DNA of 64,000 bases from Chlorokybus atmophyticus (Eukaryota; Plantae; Mesostigma and Chlorokybus algae). The notes beneath the pieces are model-generated. The model had not been told where the DNA came from, made no database searches, and was given only the letters and a program-made list of their open reading frames with translations. The translations under genes were made by a program, and so were the position numbers. The stretch spans positions 62,001-126,000 of the forward strand of contig RHPI01002076.1 of assembly GCA_009103225.1 (NCBI GenBank). Reading direction: 5' to 3'. Positions 45,036 through 53,771 of the stretch are shown one piece after another (the first letter of the stretch is position 1; every line of letters starts with the position of its first letter).

Positions 45036-48000
45036 ATGACGGCGGCGGTGGAGGTGGCGGCGGCGGCGCCCGCCGCCAAGTTGCCGGCGGGGGCGTCGCC
45101 GGAGCTGCTGGGGACGTTCTGGGGCTTGGCTTCCCTGGACCCTGCGGTGCGGCAGGCGTCGTCGAGGGAGCTGGTGCGGGTGGTGGGGGCGAGCGGAGAC
45201 AAGGCGGCGGCGAGGTACGCTCTGAGGCGGCTGCTGAAGGGGCTGGCGTCCTCCCGGGACGGCGCCCGCCAGGGTTTTGCCTCTGCTCTGGCCTCCCTCC
45301 TGGCCTCTGCTCCCGCCGCCTCTCTCTCAGCCGACCTGCCCAAGGAGGTCGCCGCCGCCTTGGAGCTGTCCGGCGGAGGAGGAGGAGGGCCGAGTGCCCG
45401 CAGCCGCAAGGATGTCAGGGAGGTGCTGCTGGGCCGTGTGCTCGCCTACGGCGCCGCCGCTCAGGCCGGCCCCGGCAAGCTGGGCCCTTCCTCCTCCGCT
45501 GTCCTGGCAGCAGCGAGGGACCTGCTGGCGGCGGCGGAGCGCAGCTCAGGGCTCAGGGAAGCCGCATGTTGCGTGCTGCTGAGGCTCCACCAGGCTCGTC
45601 CTCTTTCCCGGGAGGATGCTAAGACGCTGTTCAGCGAGCAGCCGCTTGCCAGCTGGTGCGGCGGCGAGAAACCCACCCGCCCAGAGGCGCTGCTGCTCGT
45701 CCTGGGCGGCCTGGCTAAGAGCCTGCAGGCAGCTGCTGCTGGCTTCGCTGCACCGCAGTGGGTCCAAGCACTGGCCTCTGAACCGCTGCAAGCTTTGGCT
45801 GATAAGGACATGCTCGGCAGACTGAAGAATGTCCTGCTGGTTCGTACACACGCATGCGTTGATTGCATGCATGTACTTGAATGCATGCATGTCTACACCT
45901 TCGTGTACACGTGCCCACATTGTCTGTATTGACCCTAGCCTGGAGCATGGTCTGGTCTTCCAAGCCAACAAACAGAGTGCATTGCGCATGTTTTGCATGG
46001 AGCTGGACAGCCATGCATGCGTTGTTTTGATCTCGCCCGTTTGGTCCAGCAGCGATTCCTGAGCTGCATGCCTGTGCGCGTTTTGACTGGCATTGCAGAC
46101 ATCAACTCTTGTACTCAATTGGTTCACTTATCCGTTCTCTTATCGGCTTCATGCATGTTCACGCAATAGTTGTTAGCCAAGCAGGTAGTGATTCAGCTGA
46201 CATATGTATGTTTCGACTACAGGACTCATCCAGTGCGCATCCGCGCATGCACGCCGTTTGGATGGTGCTGCTTTCGGTGTCCAGTGCAGGACAATGTACG
46301 TTGCCTACCAAAGCAGGCGAGGTTGTCACCCCAAGCAAGGAAGCTATCGACGCTTTTCTCCCAGGCTTGTGGCAAGAAGTGGTCGATGATGGTCTGCTGG
46401 CCTCCTCTCCCGAGCGCAAGCACCTCGCCTACAGCTTGTTTCAGCTGATTTTGCCTCATCTCACGCCACAACAGCTCATGTGCTGCCTGTCGGAGCAGTT
46501 TGTACATGACGTGGCCACGCACGCGCGCAGTACTGCCAGCCCTTTGCACCCGGCAGCATCTCAAGTGTGTAACCTTCTGCAGACGCAGTGTGCTTCTCTT
46601 GGCAACGGTGATCGAGTTGCAGCTCTATTGCGCCTTTCTCAGTTCACTGGTGGTGCCTTTGATCGAATGACAAACACTCGGACTGTCGCCACTCTGCATG
46701 GATTGCTTTCTCCAGATGAGCTCGAGCTCTACCGCAGCGCCTTGCTGCAGCTGTTCAACACTTCAATGGACACGCAGGCAGATGAACCAGCTGATGGACT
46801 GGCGACTTGGGTCGTGAACGAGCTGTGCAACTTGTTGAAGCACCCCAGCTTGTCCGAAGAAACCAATCAGCAGGCTGCGTTGCAGTTTCTGGCCGCGCAT
46901 GCTTTGCTGAATGTGTCATCAGAGGACTCCCCAGATGGATTGCAGTCTGTCAAAGCATCGGCACGGCTTCAGCAGCTGTGCGCCGCTCGGCTCGCGAGCG
47001 TTCTCTCAGCGCCAGCTGATCAGGTGGCAGCGAGGCGCATAACAGACCTTTTGGGCTTTCTGGAGCGTACGTTGAAGCTGTCAGGGGTTGAACTGCGCCG
47101 ACCTGCCGAAGAGGAGCTTCAGCAGTCATTGCAGTCCCTAACCAACAACTTGCAGTCCGAGGTAAGCGTGTCCTTGCTTTGTGGACTTGCGGGCTTGCAA
47201 ACCGTCAACCTGCAGAACAGCGTGCTGATGCTGTTGTAGCGTTGCTGTCATGGTTGGTGCATTAATTGTTGAATTCTGCAACTGTACTGCATGGGCTTCA
47301 TAGGCTTCAACTAGTAACTCGTGCAGGAGGCCAAGGCAACCAGCGACAGTCAATCTAGGCTGACTGTGCTGCGCGTCTTCGTGATGAGGGTTCACTTGCA
47401 GTATCTGCTGGAGCCTGAGACGTATGCCCAAGCTGCGCAGGAGCTGCCGCTGTGCATCCCGCACCTTCTGAACGACACCAAGCCGGAAGCGGACGCGCCG
47501 TCTGCGATAGATGTGTTTGTGGATCTCTTGATCAGCCTGCTTTCCACTCCAAATGCACCCTTGAGAGACATAGTGGAGCAGGTGTGTTGGTGGTGCAATC
47601 CGCTAGACAAAGCTCTTGCATACATCTTCATGGTGTAGTCACTCATTACTGGAGCAACGTTGTAGAGTTGCTTCGCCTGCACAAAGGTTTATAACAATAA
47701 ATGCTTTGGAACAGGTCTTCAAGGCGTGGTGCTTCAAGCTATCAGAGACTGCCGTAGAAGACATGTTGAGAGTTGTGAGACGTCGCATCCGTGAAGCTGC
47801 TGAAGACGCAAGTGATGATGATGTTGATGACGATGACGATGAGGAGGAGGAGGAGGAGGACGAGGATGACGTTGATGAAGGTGGTGATGACGAGGATGAT
47901 GGAGACAAACATGCATCTGATGTGGCGCGGTTGATGAAGGCTGAGGTTTCAGCAAGGGCAGTCGGTGATGAAGTTGGCTCAGAAGCTGACGAGAGTGATG

Positions 48001-49154
48001 TGGACGAGGAAGACATGGACGACGAGGCCATGTTTGCAATGGACAAGAACTTGGCTGCTGTGTTGTCTGCAAGTCGGCAGGCAAAGCTGCAGATGACTAG
48101 CACACAGCAGAGCGTGCTCAACCTGAAGCTACGCGTGCTGAGTCTTCTAGATGTCTTTCTGCATCGCCACCCAACAAACTTGCTCGTGCTACGCATAGTT
48201 CCTGCTTTGCTCCGCACGGCCTCGGCTCTGCATGATGTTGCATCTGCTGGCGTTATTGTGGAGAAGATTGTTGGCATGCTGCAGCGTTTGGCCAAAAGCA
48301 AGGACCATCCCAAAACTTTGGATCTGCCAGTCAGCCTTGCAGCAGAAGCGCTAAGGCAAGCTCTTCTCATCAGCGCTGCCAACAAGCGCGTGGCGAATGC
48401 AGCTATGGCCTGCAGCCACTTTCTCGTGCGGGTGCTGCAAGGAAGTGGCCAGACTGCCGTTGTTTGCGACACTTATGGCAAGGTGTTGCACGATGCGCTG
48501 GAAAGGAAAGCGCTCAAGCTGCCAGTTGCACTGCTGCTGGACTCTTTCTCCAGGCACACTTATCTTGTACCTGCGCTGGTGCCAAAGCTGATCCACTTGG
48601 GTTCCGCCGCTAAGACAGAGTTTTTGCGGTGCGAAGTGTTGGCGTTGCTCGCCAAAGTGCTGCGACACAACAACGTCGAGACCAACGCGTGCATCGGCGC
48701 CCAAGCGGTTCCGTTGATGTTGTTGCTGCAGTCCGCAATGCCAAAAGAACTGTCCAAGCCTGCACGCAAGGCAGACGCCTTGCAGCTCTGTTGCGTGGCG
48801 TTGCAGGGGCTTCAGCGGGTCCAGAAAGTGCTGCTGGCTGAAGACAATACAGCTCTCATACAAGCTGTCCAATCATCTCAGATTGCCACTCAGGCAGAAT
48901 GCAGCTCGCGCATTCGCTCGCTGCAACGGCAGGCTTTGAGCCTTTTGGGTGTCAAAGATGCAGCTAAGGCGGCAACTCAGCATACAGGCAAAAGGCAGGC
49001 CGATCCTGAGAAAAAGCAGCAGTTGAATCAGCCTCAAGTGTCAAAACGCAAGGCTTCCACAGCCAAGAAGGTCACCAGCAAGAGGCAAACAATGTCCGCA
49101 GTTGGCAAGGAATTAAAACCACAACAAAGCAAGGTGAAGCGTGTCAAACATTGA
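45036..49154 (+). CDS. POL5: MYB-binding protein 1A / DNA polymerase phi (Pol5) family nucleolar protein, ~4 exons
   Basis: Motifs FWGLASLDPAVRQ, YALRRLLKGLASSRDGARQGFA, HPRMHAVW, SSPERKHLAYSLF, DVFVDLLISLLS; acidic tract; MDDEAMFAMDKNLAAV; FKLR-like LKLRVLSLLDVF; basic tail. Approximate exons 45036-45840, 46222-47161, 47327-47581, 47714-49154. Confidence 0.85.
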
Positions 49155-50364: not shown

Positions 50365-53129
50365 CTACACCATGGTAACATCACTGCCTTCACTGCCATC
50401 GCTGTCTGCGCCAGAGTCGCTGGACAACTGACCACGATCAGATACTGCAGGCCCCTCACTGTTGTAGTCTACATCCCCATCTTCCATGTCGCTGTCACTG
50501 TCGCCTGCTGACGCATTGCTGGAACGTACATAGAACATCGGAGCTGCAGTGCTGTCGAAGCCGTTGAAGTTGCTGCCAGCAGCCATGGTGTAGGCTCCCA
50601 TGTCAGAAAACATGAGCCAGTCTCCGCAAGCCAGCGGAGGCAGCCAAGTGTCCTTCAAGACAGTGTCGAGACCATCACAGGTTGGCCCAAAAACAGTGGA
50701 GCGATACTGCTTAGAACCAGCACTGTCGCCACGCGGCTGCAGAGGTCTCGCAAAAAGAGTGGCATGATCATACAGGAGGCAGTTCATGGAGCCGTACAGG
50801 CCGTCGCTGATCCAGTACTCCTGCACAGGCTCTCCAGAGTTGCTGCGCCTAACACGAGTTCCAAAAATGTTGCTCGCCAATGCTGCTGCTGACTCCGCGA
50901 AGAACCTGCCTGGCTCTGCAATCACCCTAACTCCGGAGCTGGCCGGGAAGTGCAGATTTAAGGCAGCATTGATGGCATGGGCAACGTCAGCAAAGGAAAG
51001 GCCGCCAGCAATACCGCCACCGGAAAACCCACCACCGATGTCAAGGACAGTCATCTGGGGGAGCCCAAGCTGCTCCGTAAGCTCAAACACATGGCGGGCA
51101 GCTTCAATTGCTGCAGAGAATGCGGCTGGGTCACTTGCCCCACTGCCAACGTGGAAGTCTACACCTTCCACTCTGACACCAAGCTTCTGAGCGGTCAGAA
51201 GCAAGTGCTCAACTTCTGCCATCTCCGCACCGTACTTGACTCCCAGTGGGCACCTGGCGAGCTTGTCATCTGCTCGGATGCGCAGCAACATTCTTGCATT
51301 CGGATCTGACACCTTGACCTTGTGCAGCTCCGACTCAGCATCAAAAGACATCAGATGGACACCAGCTGCAGCAGCGTGCGCAATATGCGCTGGTAGCTTG
51401 CAGGGGTTGGAGAACACGATACGATCAGGTGTCACTCCGAGCTGCATGACCTTGCATAGCTCAGCCTTGCTGGCGACATCAAATCCTGCGCCTTGGGCAG
51501 CAAGCACGGCCAACAGAGCGTTGTCTGGGTTGCACTTGACAGCATAGTAGGCCTGCACGCGTGGCAGCAGTTGAGTCCACTCTGCCCAACGGCGCTCCAC
51601 TGCACCGAGATCCATCACATAGAAGGTCTCCTCCAAGCCATGCTCCACAATGCAGTCCTTAGCGAACTGGTCGTACTCAGCAGACAGGGATTTCCCGCCC
51701 AAGCGCACAGCACCAAACGCATCATATACAGCCTCGAGGTTGCCAGCATCAACATGCCTGCTAACTTGCTTCAGCAATGCTTGCTCTTCCAGCATGGCCT
51801 TCTTTGTCACCGACGTGGCAGCAGTCGCACAGTTGGCAGATCCGCTACCTCCCTTGGCAACTGTGCCAGTAGCCGTTAGCTCGCAGCGTGCTGCGCGCAA
51901 GGGGCGTCCATCATTCAAAGTGAAGTTGTAGAAGGCAACACTTCCGCCATTGAGCAGAGACTGCTTGGTCCCGTTCAAGACCTTGTACCCAGCAGCGGAG
52001 ACAGATGTTGCCCACATGCCCTGCTTTGCAGTGGAGGCACCATCGATGGTGATTGCCACAGACACACGACCTGGCTTGAACACGCACAGCACCCTTGCCA
52101 GCAGTGCATGGATGTCCAGATCAGTTCCGCAGCCACTGGCTTCGAAACTGGCGTAGCTGAAACCAGACTCAGGTGTCACATGGATGGTGCTGTGCGCTGC
52201 ACCATCAACTCCGTTCATGGAGTAGCCGCACGGCTCGAACATGAAGGCATCAATCTCCATGCTTCGAATAAGCTCACTGATAGCGGAAGTCCTTGTAGTC
52301 TCTGCAGCACTGATATAGTCTGGACTACGGAAGAACTGCGCAGCCAAGGATTCGTCCAGCTCAGTCATGCAAACTTCAATTGTGCGGTGGCACGCAGTTG
52401 CCGTTTCCTCAGCATCAGCAGTATAGACATGCCAGTGTGGCCCCCCACCTAGCGCATCACCTAGCACGAATGCTCTACTGCCGCCGGCCAACTTGCCAAA
52501 GTAGCGTTCTAGGAACTCCGTCTCCTGTTCAAAGCTACCATGAGGGTATGGCTGGACTTGAGGAAACATGAAAGTTCCTCGAGAGAACTTGACGCGTCGA
52601 ATTGGCATCTTCAGCTGGCCAGCTAGCTCAAGGATGCTTGGCACAGCCTACGCAACAGAACAAGCATGAGACTTGCAGAAGACTACTGCAATGCCCAGAA
52701 GTGCAACTGGCCAAAGTACACGACAGAACAACCATGAGACTTGCAGAACAGTGAGCTGCAGTGCCAACAAGCACAACTGACCTACACGAATTTAGAAACA
52801 AAGTATACCTTCAACAGTGCCGTAGTGCCACATGTCTTCAGCACCAGCTTTGTCGGGTAGACAAAAAGACTCGACTCCGACAACACATACGAGTCGAAGT
52901 AGTCGTTGCTCAGCTGGGAAATGATGGTGCACTCAGCAACCTGCAACATCTTGTCCAGCTGGGATCGAGTCAACTGTCGTAAGCCCTTGTCAGACCGTGA
53001 CTTGGGCAGGTAGAAATCCAATTCAAGGCGCTTCTCAAAGCCCTCAAAGCCGGGAGCCGGGAGGCACTCCACCGCCAAAGTGGGAGGCACAGCAACCGGC
53101 TCGTCTCCATGAATGTCAGGCATTCCCAT
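50365..53129 (-). CDS. SAMDC-ODC: Bifunctional S-adenosylmethionine decarboxylase - ornithine decarboxylase fusion, 2 exons, 867 aa
   Basis: GCCGCCATGG start at 53129; exons 53129-52809 and 52647-50365 (161-nt GT-AG intron). SAMDC motifs: [14 protein letters not shown]|[33 protein letters not shown] motifs: [59 protein letters not shown]. No stop or intron between the domains. Confidence 0.96.
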
Positions 53130-53292: not shown

Positions 53293-53528
53293 TCAGGAAG
53301 GCATGCGCACACACTGCACAACACACCACCGTGTCAGTAACCGTAATCAATATTTATCTCCAGCAGACATGCAAACAGACACAACAGGTAGCGCAGTGCC
53401 AGATAACTTACGTCTGCGTATGCAGCAGTGTGGAACTTCGGGATGCCGTCTGCGCGTACGTCCTCCACAGTGTATTGCAGGTGAAACTCAGAGTACGTGG
53501 TCTTGGACTTGCCGCCCTTGCGCTCCAT
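53293..53528 (-). CDS. Conserved plant-type SAMDC regulatory uORF, 45 aa, split by a 98-nt intron
   Basis: Exons 53528-53412 and 53313-53293 give MERKGGKSKTTYSEFHLQYTVEDVRADGIPKFHTAAYAD|CVRMPS*. Donor gtaagt, branch-like CTGAC, acceptor gtgcag. Aligns with the recalled plant consensus MESKGGK..GYSIEDVRPNGGIKKFRSAAYSNCARKPS*. Confidence 0.9.
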
Positions 53529-53537
53529 GGTCAATAC

Positions 53538-53771
53538 CTCTGCAGCGATGACAGCGTCATCAGCCAACTATGCTACTACCGTGAGTAATTTGCCAGACTG
53601 CTACCCCATTCAATGCTTGCATAAGATGCAACAAAAAGCGCAAACGTGCAAGAAGTGTGACTGAGCGAACGGAGATCAACGATCAACGATCAACGTTGAT
53701 CGTTGATCTCCGTTGACACAATACTGCTGACTGCTGCAAACTCGATAGACTTGCAGCTTACATACTCGCAT
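53538..53771 (-). promoter_or_regulatory. Predicted tiny uORF (Met-Arg-Val-stop) whose stop codon is created by splicing
   Basis: Putative leader exon 53822-53762 (acceptor ttctttgcgtag, donor gtaagc) ends ATG CGA GTA T. Joined to acceptor gctgcag at 53539 it gives TAG, 9 nt before the small-uORF ATG. Depends on predicted splicing. Confidence 0.5.
53668..53714. repeat. Perfect 20-bp inverted repeat (hairpin, 7-nt loop) built from GATCAAC units
   Basis: AACGGAGATCAACGATCAAC (53668-53687) and GTTGATCGTTGATCTCCGTT (53695-53714). Confidence 0.95.

Follow-up and report, generated by a model that had tools for sequence, protein, structure and literature searches.

In a 64,000-nucleotide stretch of Chlorokybus atmophyticus DNA (the window, to which all positions below refer), a minus-strand gene with two exons was found to be a real fusion of SAMDC (AdoMetDC) and ODC. 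The locus is very probably a functional nuclear gene, of which a single mRNA would be translated into an 867-residue bifunctional polyamine proenzyme. This gene is nothing new in kind, as it is already represented by a public gene model and as the AdoMetDC/ODC type has been characterized in Plasmodium. It is an ordinary member of an old, widespread, and little-studied fusion family.

Gene structure and the domain junction

The coding sequence is divided over two exons (Table 1), and the only stop codon in the spliced 867-aa product was the terminal one. Exon 1 covers the disordered N-terminal segment, the beta chain of SAMDC, and the first part of the alpha chain, and by itself it matched Pfam SAM_decarbox at 9e-35. 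Exon 2 specifies the remaining part of SAMDC, the linker, the whole of ODC, and an acidic tail, and matches to each of the Pfam profiles SAM_decarbox, Orn_Arg_deC_N, and Orn_DAP_Arg_deC were located inside it. Because the domain junction lies within one ORF of exon 2, SAMDC and ODC are joined without recourse to any predicted splice. A 32-nt direct repeat was observed within intron 1, with copies at 52649-52680 and 52717-52748 that are 91% identical.

A preliminary description of this DNA had placed SAMDC and ODC in one 867-aa polypeptide and had argued that their junction, being inside one exon, was not a gene-model artefact. The two-exon gene, the Pfam matches, and the motifs described below confirmed the first point, and the uninterrupted 759-codon ORF confirmed the second. 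The 867-aa product corresponds to residues 82-948 of public gene model P0001, whose 5' end is partly artefactual in that a uORF was spliced onto the main ORF to yield 948 aa, and two entries from other organisms (Closterium P0260 and frog P0366) are clearly mis-modelled. An assembly or annotation artefact that joined two neighbouring genes is, however, extremely improbable in view of the splice-free junction, a Chlorokybus paralogue on another scaffold with 92% identity and the same architecture, and the occurrence of the same domain order in at least 155 proteins, many of them from transcript assemblies. As far as sequence goes, this explanation was therefore rejected. A look-up of the exact 867-aa sequence in public assemblies (Chlorokybus transcripts) gave no match.

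Table 1. Features of the SAMDC-ODC gene and its leader, with positions in the window.
Feature	Position	Strand	Basis or remark
Possible tiny uORF, 9 codons	53560-53531	minus	Unspliced genomic reading
Plant SAMDC-type small uORF, 45 codons after inferred splicing	53528-53293	minus	Pfam AdoMetDC_leader
SAMDC-ODC CDS exon 1, codons 1-107	53129-52809	minus	ATG at 53129 and GT donor at 52808 read; translation verified
SAMDC domain, residues 27-349, spanning intron 1	53051-51922	minus	Pfam PF01536, 2.2e-102
Predicted autoprocessing site Glu85/Ser86, with Ser86 predicted to become the pyruvoyl group	52877-52872	minus	Alignment with human Glu67/Ser68; codons verified
Intron 1, 161 nt	52808-52648	minus	GT..AG (GTATAC...GCGTAG)
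CDS exon 2, 2,283 nt, codons 108-867 and stop	52647-50365	minus	Single uninterrupted 759-codon ORF
Disordered, weakly conserved linker, residues 354-387	51909-51808	minus	AlphaFold2 pLDDT <50
ODC domain, residues 449-816, TIM barrel and beta-sheet domain	51624-50521	minus	PF02784 and PF00278
Lys478, predicted PLP Schiff-base lysine (T. brucei ODC Lys69)	51537-51535	minus	Alignment; codon verified
Acidic Ser/Asp-rich C-terminal tail, residues 820-867, disordered	50511-50368	minus	pLDDT <50

Sequence features of the SAMDC and ODC halves

The match of the N-terminal half to PF01536 scored 343.1 bits (cut-off 22.2) and covered profile positions 3-342 of 343. Its best relatives of solved structure were potato SAMDC (1MHM, 1.5e-60) and the human enzyme (1MSV/1JL0). 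The motif YVLSESS aligned with the human proenzyme site Glu67/Ser68, and S84, E85, S86, and S87 were invariant among 30 aligned fusions. The SAMDC motifs were located at residues 83-87 (LSE/SS), 98-102 (KTCGT), 245-250 (EPCGYS), and 262-267 (IHVTPE). Also invariant in this alignment were the FEGFEK residues Glu29 and Glu32, Cys100, Phe244, Ser250, His263, and Glu267, whose human counterparts are Glu8, Glu11, Cys82, Phe223, Ser229, His243, and Glu247, respectively. The half thus combines a full-length profile match, the Glu/Ser cleavage motif, and the catalytic and substrate residues by which a class 2 SAMDC is recognized, in agreement with the earlier reading of a complete, plant-type SAMDC with its E/S site and KTCG, CGYS, and IHVTPE motifs.

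In the C-terminal half, Orn_Arg_deC_N (PF02784) matched residues 455-691 (7.7e-72, 242.1 bits, cut-off 23.4) and Orn_DAP_Arg_deC (PF00278) matched residues 449-791 (2.8e-18, 66.4 bits, cut-off 23). A scan with these two profiles and SAM_decarbox had been proposed in the preliminary description, and all three scored far above their cut-offs, well outside the range of chance matches. Lys478 was invariant among the 30 aligned fusions, and the motifs YAVKCN (475-480), FHVGSG (605-610), AEPGR (684-688), LYDH (732-735), GPTCDG (761-766), and MGAYT (790-794) were all located. Residues K478, D497, R563, H606, GGG 645-647, E685, and R688 (T. brucei ODC K69, D88, R154, H197, G235-237, E274, and R277), as well as D722, C764, D765, Y793, F801, and N802 (T. 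brucei D332, C360, D361, Y389, F397, and N398), were either invariant or conserved in at least 90% of the 30 fusions. Both profiles, the PLP lysine, the glycine loop, and the equivalents of Cys360, Asp361, and Asp332 that together characterize an ODC were thus found in the sequence, and the complete fold-III ODC reported earlier, with its PLP lysine and every motif then named, was recovered.

Other substrates were considered for this half. The arginine decarboxylase of PBCV-1 (2NV9) was among its solved relatives at 2.5e-71, and in one source the name of a Huperzia homologue (P0254) starts with 'lysin...'. Homologues of ODC whose specificity has changed are known, and chlorovirus and Pelagibacter cases have been described (PMC10407285). 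However, the best solved matches were true ODCs (T. brucei 1F3T and human ODC entries, at about 2e-102), the residues that bind the distal amine of the substrate, Asp722 and Asp765 (D332 and D361), were of the ODC type and invariant, and the domain fell within a green ODC clade that includes seed-plant proteins annotated as ODC. Asp722 is the same residue as in ODCs, at a position that is presumably Glu in the viral arginine decarboxylase. Decarboxylation of arginine or lysine instead of ornithine is, on these grounds, highly improbable, and this option was rejected.

Both halves look catalytically complete in sequence. A fusion with a single activity, its other half serving as a catalytically dead scaffold or regulator, would have precedents in this pathway, in the manner of antizyme inhibitor or trypanosomatid prozyme. 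Antizyme inhibitor (3BTN, 4ZGZ) was among the solved relatives of the ODC half, and trypanosomatid AdoMetDC (5TVF, reportedly a complex with prozyme) was among those of the SAMDC half. Dead paralogues usually lose catalytic residues, whereas here the catalytic and cofactor residues of both halves were fully or almost fully conserved across 30 fusions of widely separated lineages, and column conservation in the fusion alignment reached 0.7-0.85 in the catalytic blocks. With these residues intact and conserved in both halves, a dead-domain scaffold is very improbable and was rejected.

Column conservation over residues 361-400, by contrast with the catalytic blocks, was 0.17. An AlphaFold2 monomer model showed two confident domains (pLDDT mostly >90) with the disordered stretch between them; its pTM of 0.56 means that the inter-domain geometry is not reliable, and the model thus lends no support to regulation between the domains. 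After the 34 disordered residues, modelled helices run into the ODC domain. By homology to solved structures of both enzymes the gap between SAMDC and ODC is about 55 aa. The length of 60-70 aa first estimated was about right; among 119 fusions, linkers of 18 to 211 aa were measured, with a median of 66. The C-terminal tail was not conserved, with an alignment occupancy of 0.13-0.37.

Leader reading frames, distribution, and domain trees

Upstream of the main ATG, the first exon of the small uORF matched AdoMetDC_leader (PF08132) at 6.6e-9 (35.9 bits, cut-off 25). Its inferred intron is 98 nt long (GT..AG, 53411-53314), and the spliced uORF would terminate in Cys-Val-Arg-Met-Pro-Ser-stop. It aligned with a contiguous, unspliced uORF on an intronless 3,229-nt contig of a relative (L001), which carries a tiny uORF, a small uORF ending in CVRKPS-stop, and an 876-aa fusion ORF. 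The spacer between the uORF stop and the main ATG measured 163 nt in Chlorokybus and 162 nt in L001. The tiny and small uORFs of L001 overlap by 1 nt (ATGACATAATGG); in the unspliced reading of the Chlorokybus DNA, the tiny uORF stops 2 nt before the small-uORF ATG and the plant-typical 1-nt overlap is absent. According to PMC13582744 (citing Hanfrey 2005), plant SAMDC has two overlapping uORFs that confer spermidine/spermine-regulated translation. Consistent with such a role, the leader uORF of Chlorokybus probably acts as a single polyamine-sensing brake on the translation of the SAMDC and ODC activities alike. If the green fusions share the seed-plant SAMDC uORF, as seems to be the case, one translational brake would throttle both rate-limiting decarboxylases.

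At least 155 two-domain proteins were retrieved, and SAMDC preceded ODC in 155 of 155. They came from chlorophytes, streptophyte algae, liverworts, Selaginella, ferns, Cyanophora, Chromera, apicomplexans, and Diphylleia. Among the Mamiellophyceae, Crustomastix and Mantoniella carried the fusion; the Micromonas fusion mentioned in the preliminary description was not confirmed by the literature searched. The preliminary description had regarded the two enzymes as products of separate genes in land plants, which does not hold for liverworts (Marchantia, Riccia, Calypogeia), Selaginella, and ferns (Adiantum, Ceratopteris), all of which yielded full-length fusions. Its reading of this copy as a green-lineage fusion was too narrow: the fusion is neither specific to this copy nor confined to green organisms, since it also occurs in Cyanophora, Chromera, Cardiosporidium, Selenidium, Diphylleia, and Leptophrys. 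Contrary to part of the malaria literature (PMC3940083), the fusion is thus not unique to malaria parasites, and it is present in the model plants Marchantia, Selaginella, and Ceratopteris. The Plasmodium relatives Chromera, Cardiosporidium, and Selenidium were found with the Chlorokybus protein as query, and the best 150 representatives matched by it did not include the Plasmodium protein itself. In full-text literature searches, no paper was found that describes a SAMDC-ODC fusion from the green lineage or that assays either activity or proenzyme cleavage in one. The Closterium and frog entries mentioned above are examples, in other genomes, of mis-modelled 'stand-alone' or 'fusion' proteins.

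The domain trees were built without a Plasmodium sequence and without non-green stand-alone SAMDCs, and the SAMDC tree thus had no stand-alone outgroup. The Chlorokybus SAMDC domain was nested among plant SAMDCs, and its ODC domain was placed inside the green ODC clade with 100/96 support. The Chromera, Cardiosporidium, and Selenidium fusions formed a clade of their own, and the weak backbone of the trees did not fix its placement relative to the green fusions. The trees suggest that the ancestor of the green lineage may already have had the fusion, and that the stand-alone ODC of seed plants may be an old duplicate that lost its SAMDC half. They offer a testable history of plant ODC and SAMDC, with an ancestral fusion and later fission. 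A more far-reaching scenario is put forward tentatively, as one that may well prove wrong: a uORF-controlled fusion would be ancestral in the green lineage and possibly already in an older ancestor shared with glaucophytes, alveolates, and CRuMs, the ODC and SAMDC of seed plants would be fission products, and the Plasmodium enzyme would be a relic and not an invention of the parasite.

Repeated origin of stand-alone ODC and SAMDC genes from the fusion family, as seen in these trees, could also be taken to indicate that the fused gene yields two separate enzymes, whether by an internal promoter, by alternative polyadenylation or splicing, or by proteolysis of the linker, which is disordered and unconserved at residues 354-387 and could be cut. 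Several observations argue against this. The ORF is uninterrupted, and transcriptome assemblies (TRINITY, MMETSP) of Coleochaete, Netrium, Crustomastix, Mantoniella, Tetraselmis, and Acetabularia hold the whole fused ORF on one molecule. The Plasmodium enzyme stays joined except for SAMDC self-processing (PMC3940083), and retention of the fusion from prasinophytes to ferns would point to selection on the joined state. Production of separate enzymes is accordingly considered quite improbable.

Proposed mechanism and comparison with known systems

In the proposed mechanism, the bifunctional proenzyme would cut itself between Glu85 and Ser86 to give a small beta chain (residues 1-85) and a pyruvoyl-bearing alpha chain, which would extend via the flexible linker into a complete PLP-dependent ODC. 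The ODC active site is predicted to form across a dimer, from Lys478 of one chain and Cys764/Asp765 of the other. Since such active sites would span the dimer, the expected working unit would be (alpha-beta)2, as reported for Plasmodium AdoMetDC/ODC. The predicted products, putrescine and decarboxylated AdoMet, are the two substrates of spermidine synthase and would originate from equal numbers of domains, both held under the putative brake of the conserved leader uORF. The forced 1:1 putrescine/dcSAM capacity proposed in the preliminary description is at most conjectural: joining the enzymes secures equal numbers of SAMDC and ODC domains, not equal fluxes.

The closest characterized system is AdoMetDC/ODC of Plasmodium falciparum, with which the Chlorokybus protein shares an N-terminal AdoMetDC, a hinge, and a C-terminal ODC in one polypeptide; the Plasmodium-type order claimed at the outset was thus recovered in a single reading frame. 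The Plasmodium enzyme is much longer and contains parasite-specific inserts, whereas the Chlorokybus protein, at 867 aa, is compact and has a short linker and a plant-type SAMDC, and its gene has a plant uORF. For inter-domain regulation of the Plasmodium enzyme, which is hard to express, a tractable model could be provided by a compact homologue free of inserts, taken from an alga that can be cultured or from a liverwort that can be transformed. Of the two, the Plasmodium enzyme is the one that has been characterized biochemically, and the Chlorokybus protein is known from sequence. PfAdoMetDC/ODC forms a heterotetrameric complex, in which equimolar synthesis is achieved via inter-domain modulation of AdoMetDC activity (PMC3940083).

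With stand-alone plant SAMDCs (potato 1MHM; Arabidopsis SAMDC1-3), the Chlorokybus gene has in common a small uORF that ends in Pro-Ser-stop; it differs from them in the whole ODC at its C-terminus and, in the unspliced reading, in the lack of a 1-base overlap of its tiny uORF. Arg34 and Lys127 of the Chlorokybus protein are basic, as are the arginines of potato SAMDC at these positions, where the human enzyme has Leu13 and Phe111. Asp174 of human SAMDC is absent from Chlorokybus, which has His194 in its place. The equivalents of Arg34, Lys127, and human Asp174 have reportedly been linked, in work on the potato SAMDC structure, to putrescine-independent activity.

Compared with eukaryotic stand-alone ODCs of the alanine-racemase fold (T. 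brucei 1F3T, human 1D7K, plant ODC), all active-site residues are kept in the Chlorokybus ODC, which differs in being attached to SAMDC. Its acidic C-terminal tail is unrelated in sequence to the degradation tail of mammalian ODC. Antizyme is not known from plants, and control of the Chlorokybus ODC is therefore more likely to be translational.

Other fusions of polyamine enzymes join successive or feeding steps of spermidine synthesis (PMC12803844; PMC6356823). They include bacterial and diatom AdoMetDC-aminopropyltransferases, animal spermine synthase, and actinobacterial fusions of an ODC-like domain with class 1 AdoMet_dc, and atlas clusters from Actinomycetota combined Orn_Arg_deC domains with PF02675 AdoMet_dc or with Spermine_synth. 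Since the partners differ, or the SAMDC domain is of the prokaryotic class 1 type, these proteins are independent events that lie outside the SAMDC-ODC family to which the Chlorokybus gene belongs.

Structure and predicted catalytic competence of the fusion gene

Splicing of the two exons of the SAMDC-ODC gene (see table) yielded a product of 867 aa, exactly the length claimed in the preliminary description and identical to residues 82-948 of P0001, a public model from the early-branching streptophyte alga Chlorokybus atmophyticus (948 aa; JGI Chlat1 1737, Chrsp13S02157). As that description had also stated, the boundary between the two enzymes was located within one exon, the 2,283-nt exon 2, so that their joining requires no splice prediction. 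All motifs named there were found in the translated product, and the HMM scan it had proposed matched SAM_decarbox, Orn_Arg_deC_N, and Orn_DAP_Arg_deC on this single protein. Intron 1 contained a 32-nt direct repeat (52649-52680 and 52717-52748, 91% identical), with copy starts 68 nt apart. A convergent neighbour on the plus strand (47616-49154) consisted of a long exon whose translation comprises an acidic segment and the C-terminal portion of a DNA polymerase phi/Myb-binding-protein-1A-like protein (Pfam DNA_pol_phi, 1e-22).

Positions of gene elements and protein domains of the SAMDC-ODC fusion
Feature	Position	Strand	Details
Small uORF	start 53528, end 53293	minus	upstream of main ATG; 45 codons after splicing
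uORF intron	GT at 53411, AG at 53314	minus	98 nt; predicted splice
Exon 1	53129-52809	minus	ATG at 53129; 107 codons; GT donor at end
Intron 1	52808-52648	minus	161 nt; GT..AG
Exon 2	from 52647; stop 50367-50365	minus	2,283 nt; uninterrupted
SAM_decarbox	residues 27-349		Pfam, 2.2e-102
Orn_Arg_deC_N	residues 455-691		Pfam, 7.7e-72
Orn_DAP_Arg_deC	residues 449-791		Pfam, 2.8e-18

Among solved structures, potato SAMDC (1MHM, 1.5e-60) was the best match to the SAMDC half, and mutants of the human proenzyme came next. In alignments, the predicted self-cleavage site Glu85|Ser86 (YVLSESS) corresponded to human Glu67/Ser68, Cys100, Ser250, His263, and Glu267 to human Cys82, Ser229, His243, and Glu247, and the glutamates of the FEGFEK motif to human Glu8/Glu11. 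At the sites equivalent to human Leu13, Phe111, and Asp174, the Chlorokybus protein carried Arg34, Lys127, and His194, and potato SAMDC Arg, Arg, and Val. Since basic residues reportedly take the place of bound putrescine in the potato structure, the Chlorokybus SAMDC half is expected to be a putrescine-independent, plant-type enzyme. The ODC half matched Trypanosoma brucei and human ODC at approximately 2e-102 and retained equivalents of Lys69, Asp88, Arg154, His197, the GGG loop, Glu274, Arg277, Asp332, Cys360, Asp361, Tyr389, and Phe397/Asn398.

When 30 fusions of widely separated lineages were aligned, these SAMDC and ODC catalytic residues were invariant or nearly so; conservation of residues 361-400 was only 0.17. 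An AlphaFold2 model built on this alignment (mean pLDDT 81.8) showed two confident domains and disordered stretches at residues 1-26, 354-387, and 820-867; its pTM of 0.56 made the relative placement of the domains unreliable. Nothing in the sequence suggests that either half is a dead domain.

Distribution and history of the fusion

When the product of the second exon was used as query, more than 120 proteins among the matches listed had the precomputed architecture PF01536 + PF02784 + PF00278. These included a Chlorokybus paralogue (92% identical to the protein encoded in the window) and proteins from streptophyte algae (Mesotaenium, Klebsormidium, Closterium), liverworts (Marchantia, Riccia, Calypogeia), the lycophyte Selaginella, ferns (Adiantum, Ceratopteris), and many chlorophytes. 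An exhaustive HMMER scan over 1.84 billion cluster representatives yielded additional, more divergent fusions. In the pooled set, at least 155 two-domain proteins were found, with SAMDC preceding ODC in 155 of 155. Cluster look-ups, with taxon names as given by the source records, added further green hosts (Coleochaete, Netrium, Crustomastix, Mantoniella, Tetraselmis, Acetabularia, Neomeris), the glaucophyte Cyanophora paradoxa, the alveolates Chromera velia, Cardiosporidium cionae, and Selenidium serpulae, the CRuMs member Diphylleia rotans, and the rhizarian Leptophrys vorax; since the latter eats algae, contamination is possible. The earlier statement that SAMDC and ODC are separate genes in land plants thus applied to the seed plants and mosses in the sample, but not to liverworts, lycophytes, and ferns. 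Fusion and stand-alone copies occurred together in several species, among them Adiantum, Calypogeia, and Klebsormidium. The full-length query also matched, over its ODC part, a 1170-aa model from the frog Gastrophryne carolinensis (P0366) on a 525-Mb scaffold. This model was absent from the two-domain proteins listed by the domain scan of the pooled set and may represent contamination, a sequence from a parasite, or an erroneously joined model.

Each tree was based on a single alignment method and a single model. In the ODC tree (61 rows; careful tree search; rooted on stand-alone representatives), green ODCs formed a single clade (support 100/96), whose nearest neighbours were fusions, namely those of Cyanophora and Diphylleia, an MMETSP protein, and one more. 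Within the streptophyte ODCs (96/87), the Chlorokybus fusions paired with a stand-alone Mesostigma model (98/91), and this pair was sister to two clean clades: stand-alone ODCs of Klebsormidium and land plants (96/88), and fusion-borne ODCs of Klebsormidium, Coleochaete, Zygnematophyceae, liverworts, Selaginella, and ferns (96/89). In the simplest reading, which depends on the root, the ancestral green ODC would already have been fused, and a duplicate without the SAMDC half would have arisen before the Klebsormidium split and become the seed-plant ODC.

In the SAMDC tree (51 rows), by contrast, land-plant SAMDCs formed a single clade (99/97) in which fusion-borne and stand-alone copies were intermixed by plant group. 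Monophyly of the stand-alone SAMDCs of land plants was rejected by an AU test (p ~6e-58, for a group defined after a quick tree). The conflict between two old, clean ODC clades and mixed SAMDCs suggests either repeated loss of the ODC half (fission) or gene conversion between fusion-borne and stand-alone SAMDCs. Some 'stand-alone' models in the trees may be truncated; a Closterium 'stand-alone' ODC (P0260) was identical to the ODC part of a fusion, and a Marchantia paleacea model (P0132) was, at 562 aa, long for a stand-alone SAMDC.

Upstream open reading frame

The first 39 codons of the small uORF matched Pfam AdoMetDC_leader (35.9 bits; cut-off 25). Without its 98-nt intron, the uORF terminates in Cys-Val-Arg-Met-Pro-Ser-stop, a predicted splice that was supported by L001, an intron-free 3,229-nt contig of a relative (public run ERR2041114). 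L001 contained, in order, a 2-codon tiny uORF whose stop overlapped the following ATG by one base, the classic 1-nt overlap between tiny and small uORFs; a 53-codon uORF ending CVRKPS-stop; a spacer of 162 nt, versus 163 nt in Chlorokybus; and an 876-aa fusion ORF. In a second public contig, L002, a uORF with a KPS-stop end lay 49 nt upstream of an 869-aa fusion ORF. SAMDC-type uORFs were thus situated directly 5' of the fusion ORF in both contigs (L001 1-510, L002 1-160). In Arabidopsis, paired SAMDC uORFs place translation under regulation by spermidine/spermine, as stated in a passage of PMC13582744 that cites Hanfrey 2005. By analogy, a single uORF brake would act on both decarboxylases in Chlorokybus.

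In P0001, the uORF was spliced to the main ORF via a different acceptor (window 53293-53560, minus strand), and the model of the paralogue (P0002; Chrsp1S03129, outside the window) joined them in yet another way. Both joins look like annotation artefacts that hide the regulatory uORF. P0002 additionally lacked 48 residues, among them the cysteine of KTCG and the site of self-cleavage, because of either an incorrectly selected splice site or a genuine deletion, which would kill its SAMDC half.

Comparison with known systems

A literature search found no paper on green-lineage members of the SAMDC-ODC fusion. Public annotations nevertheless show the architecture plainly, and a public model of the window gene exists. 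This locus in itself is of less value than the wide spread of the family, the shared uORF, and the suggested origin of the seed-plant genes by fission. Actinomycetota clusters in the ESM Atlas combined Orn/Arg-decarboxylase domains with prokaryotic AdoMet_dc (~506 aa) or with a spermine-synthase domain (~653 aa), and appear to be bacterial fusions that joined the same steps of the pathway independently. Among characterised enzymes, the nearest counterpart is the AdoMetDC/ODC of Plasmodium falciparum, a heterotetrameric bifunctional complex, called unique in its literature, in which AdoMetDC activity is modulated by the ODC partner (PMC3940083). The Chlorokybus fusion has the defining architecture of this Plasmodium-type enzyme and, as far as can be judged from its sequence, would work like it.
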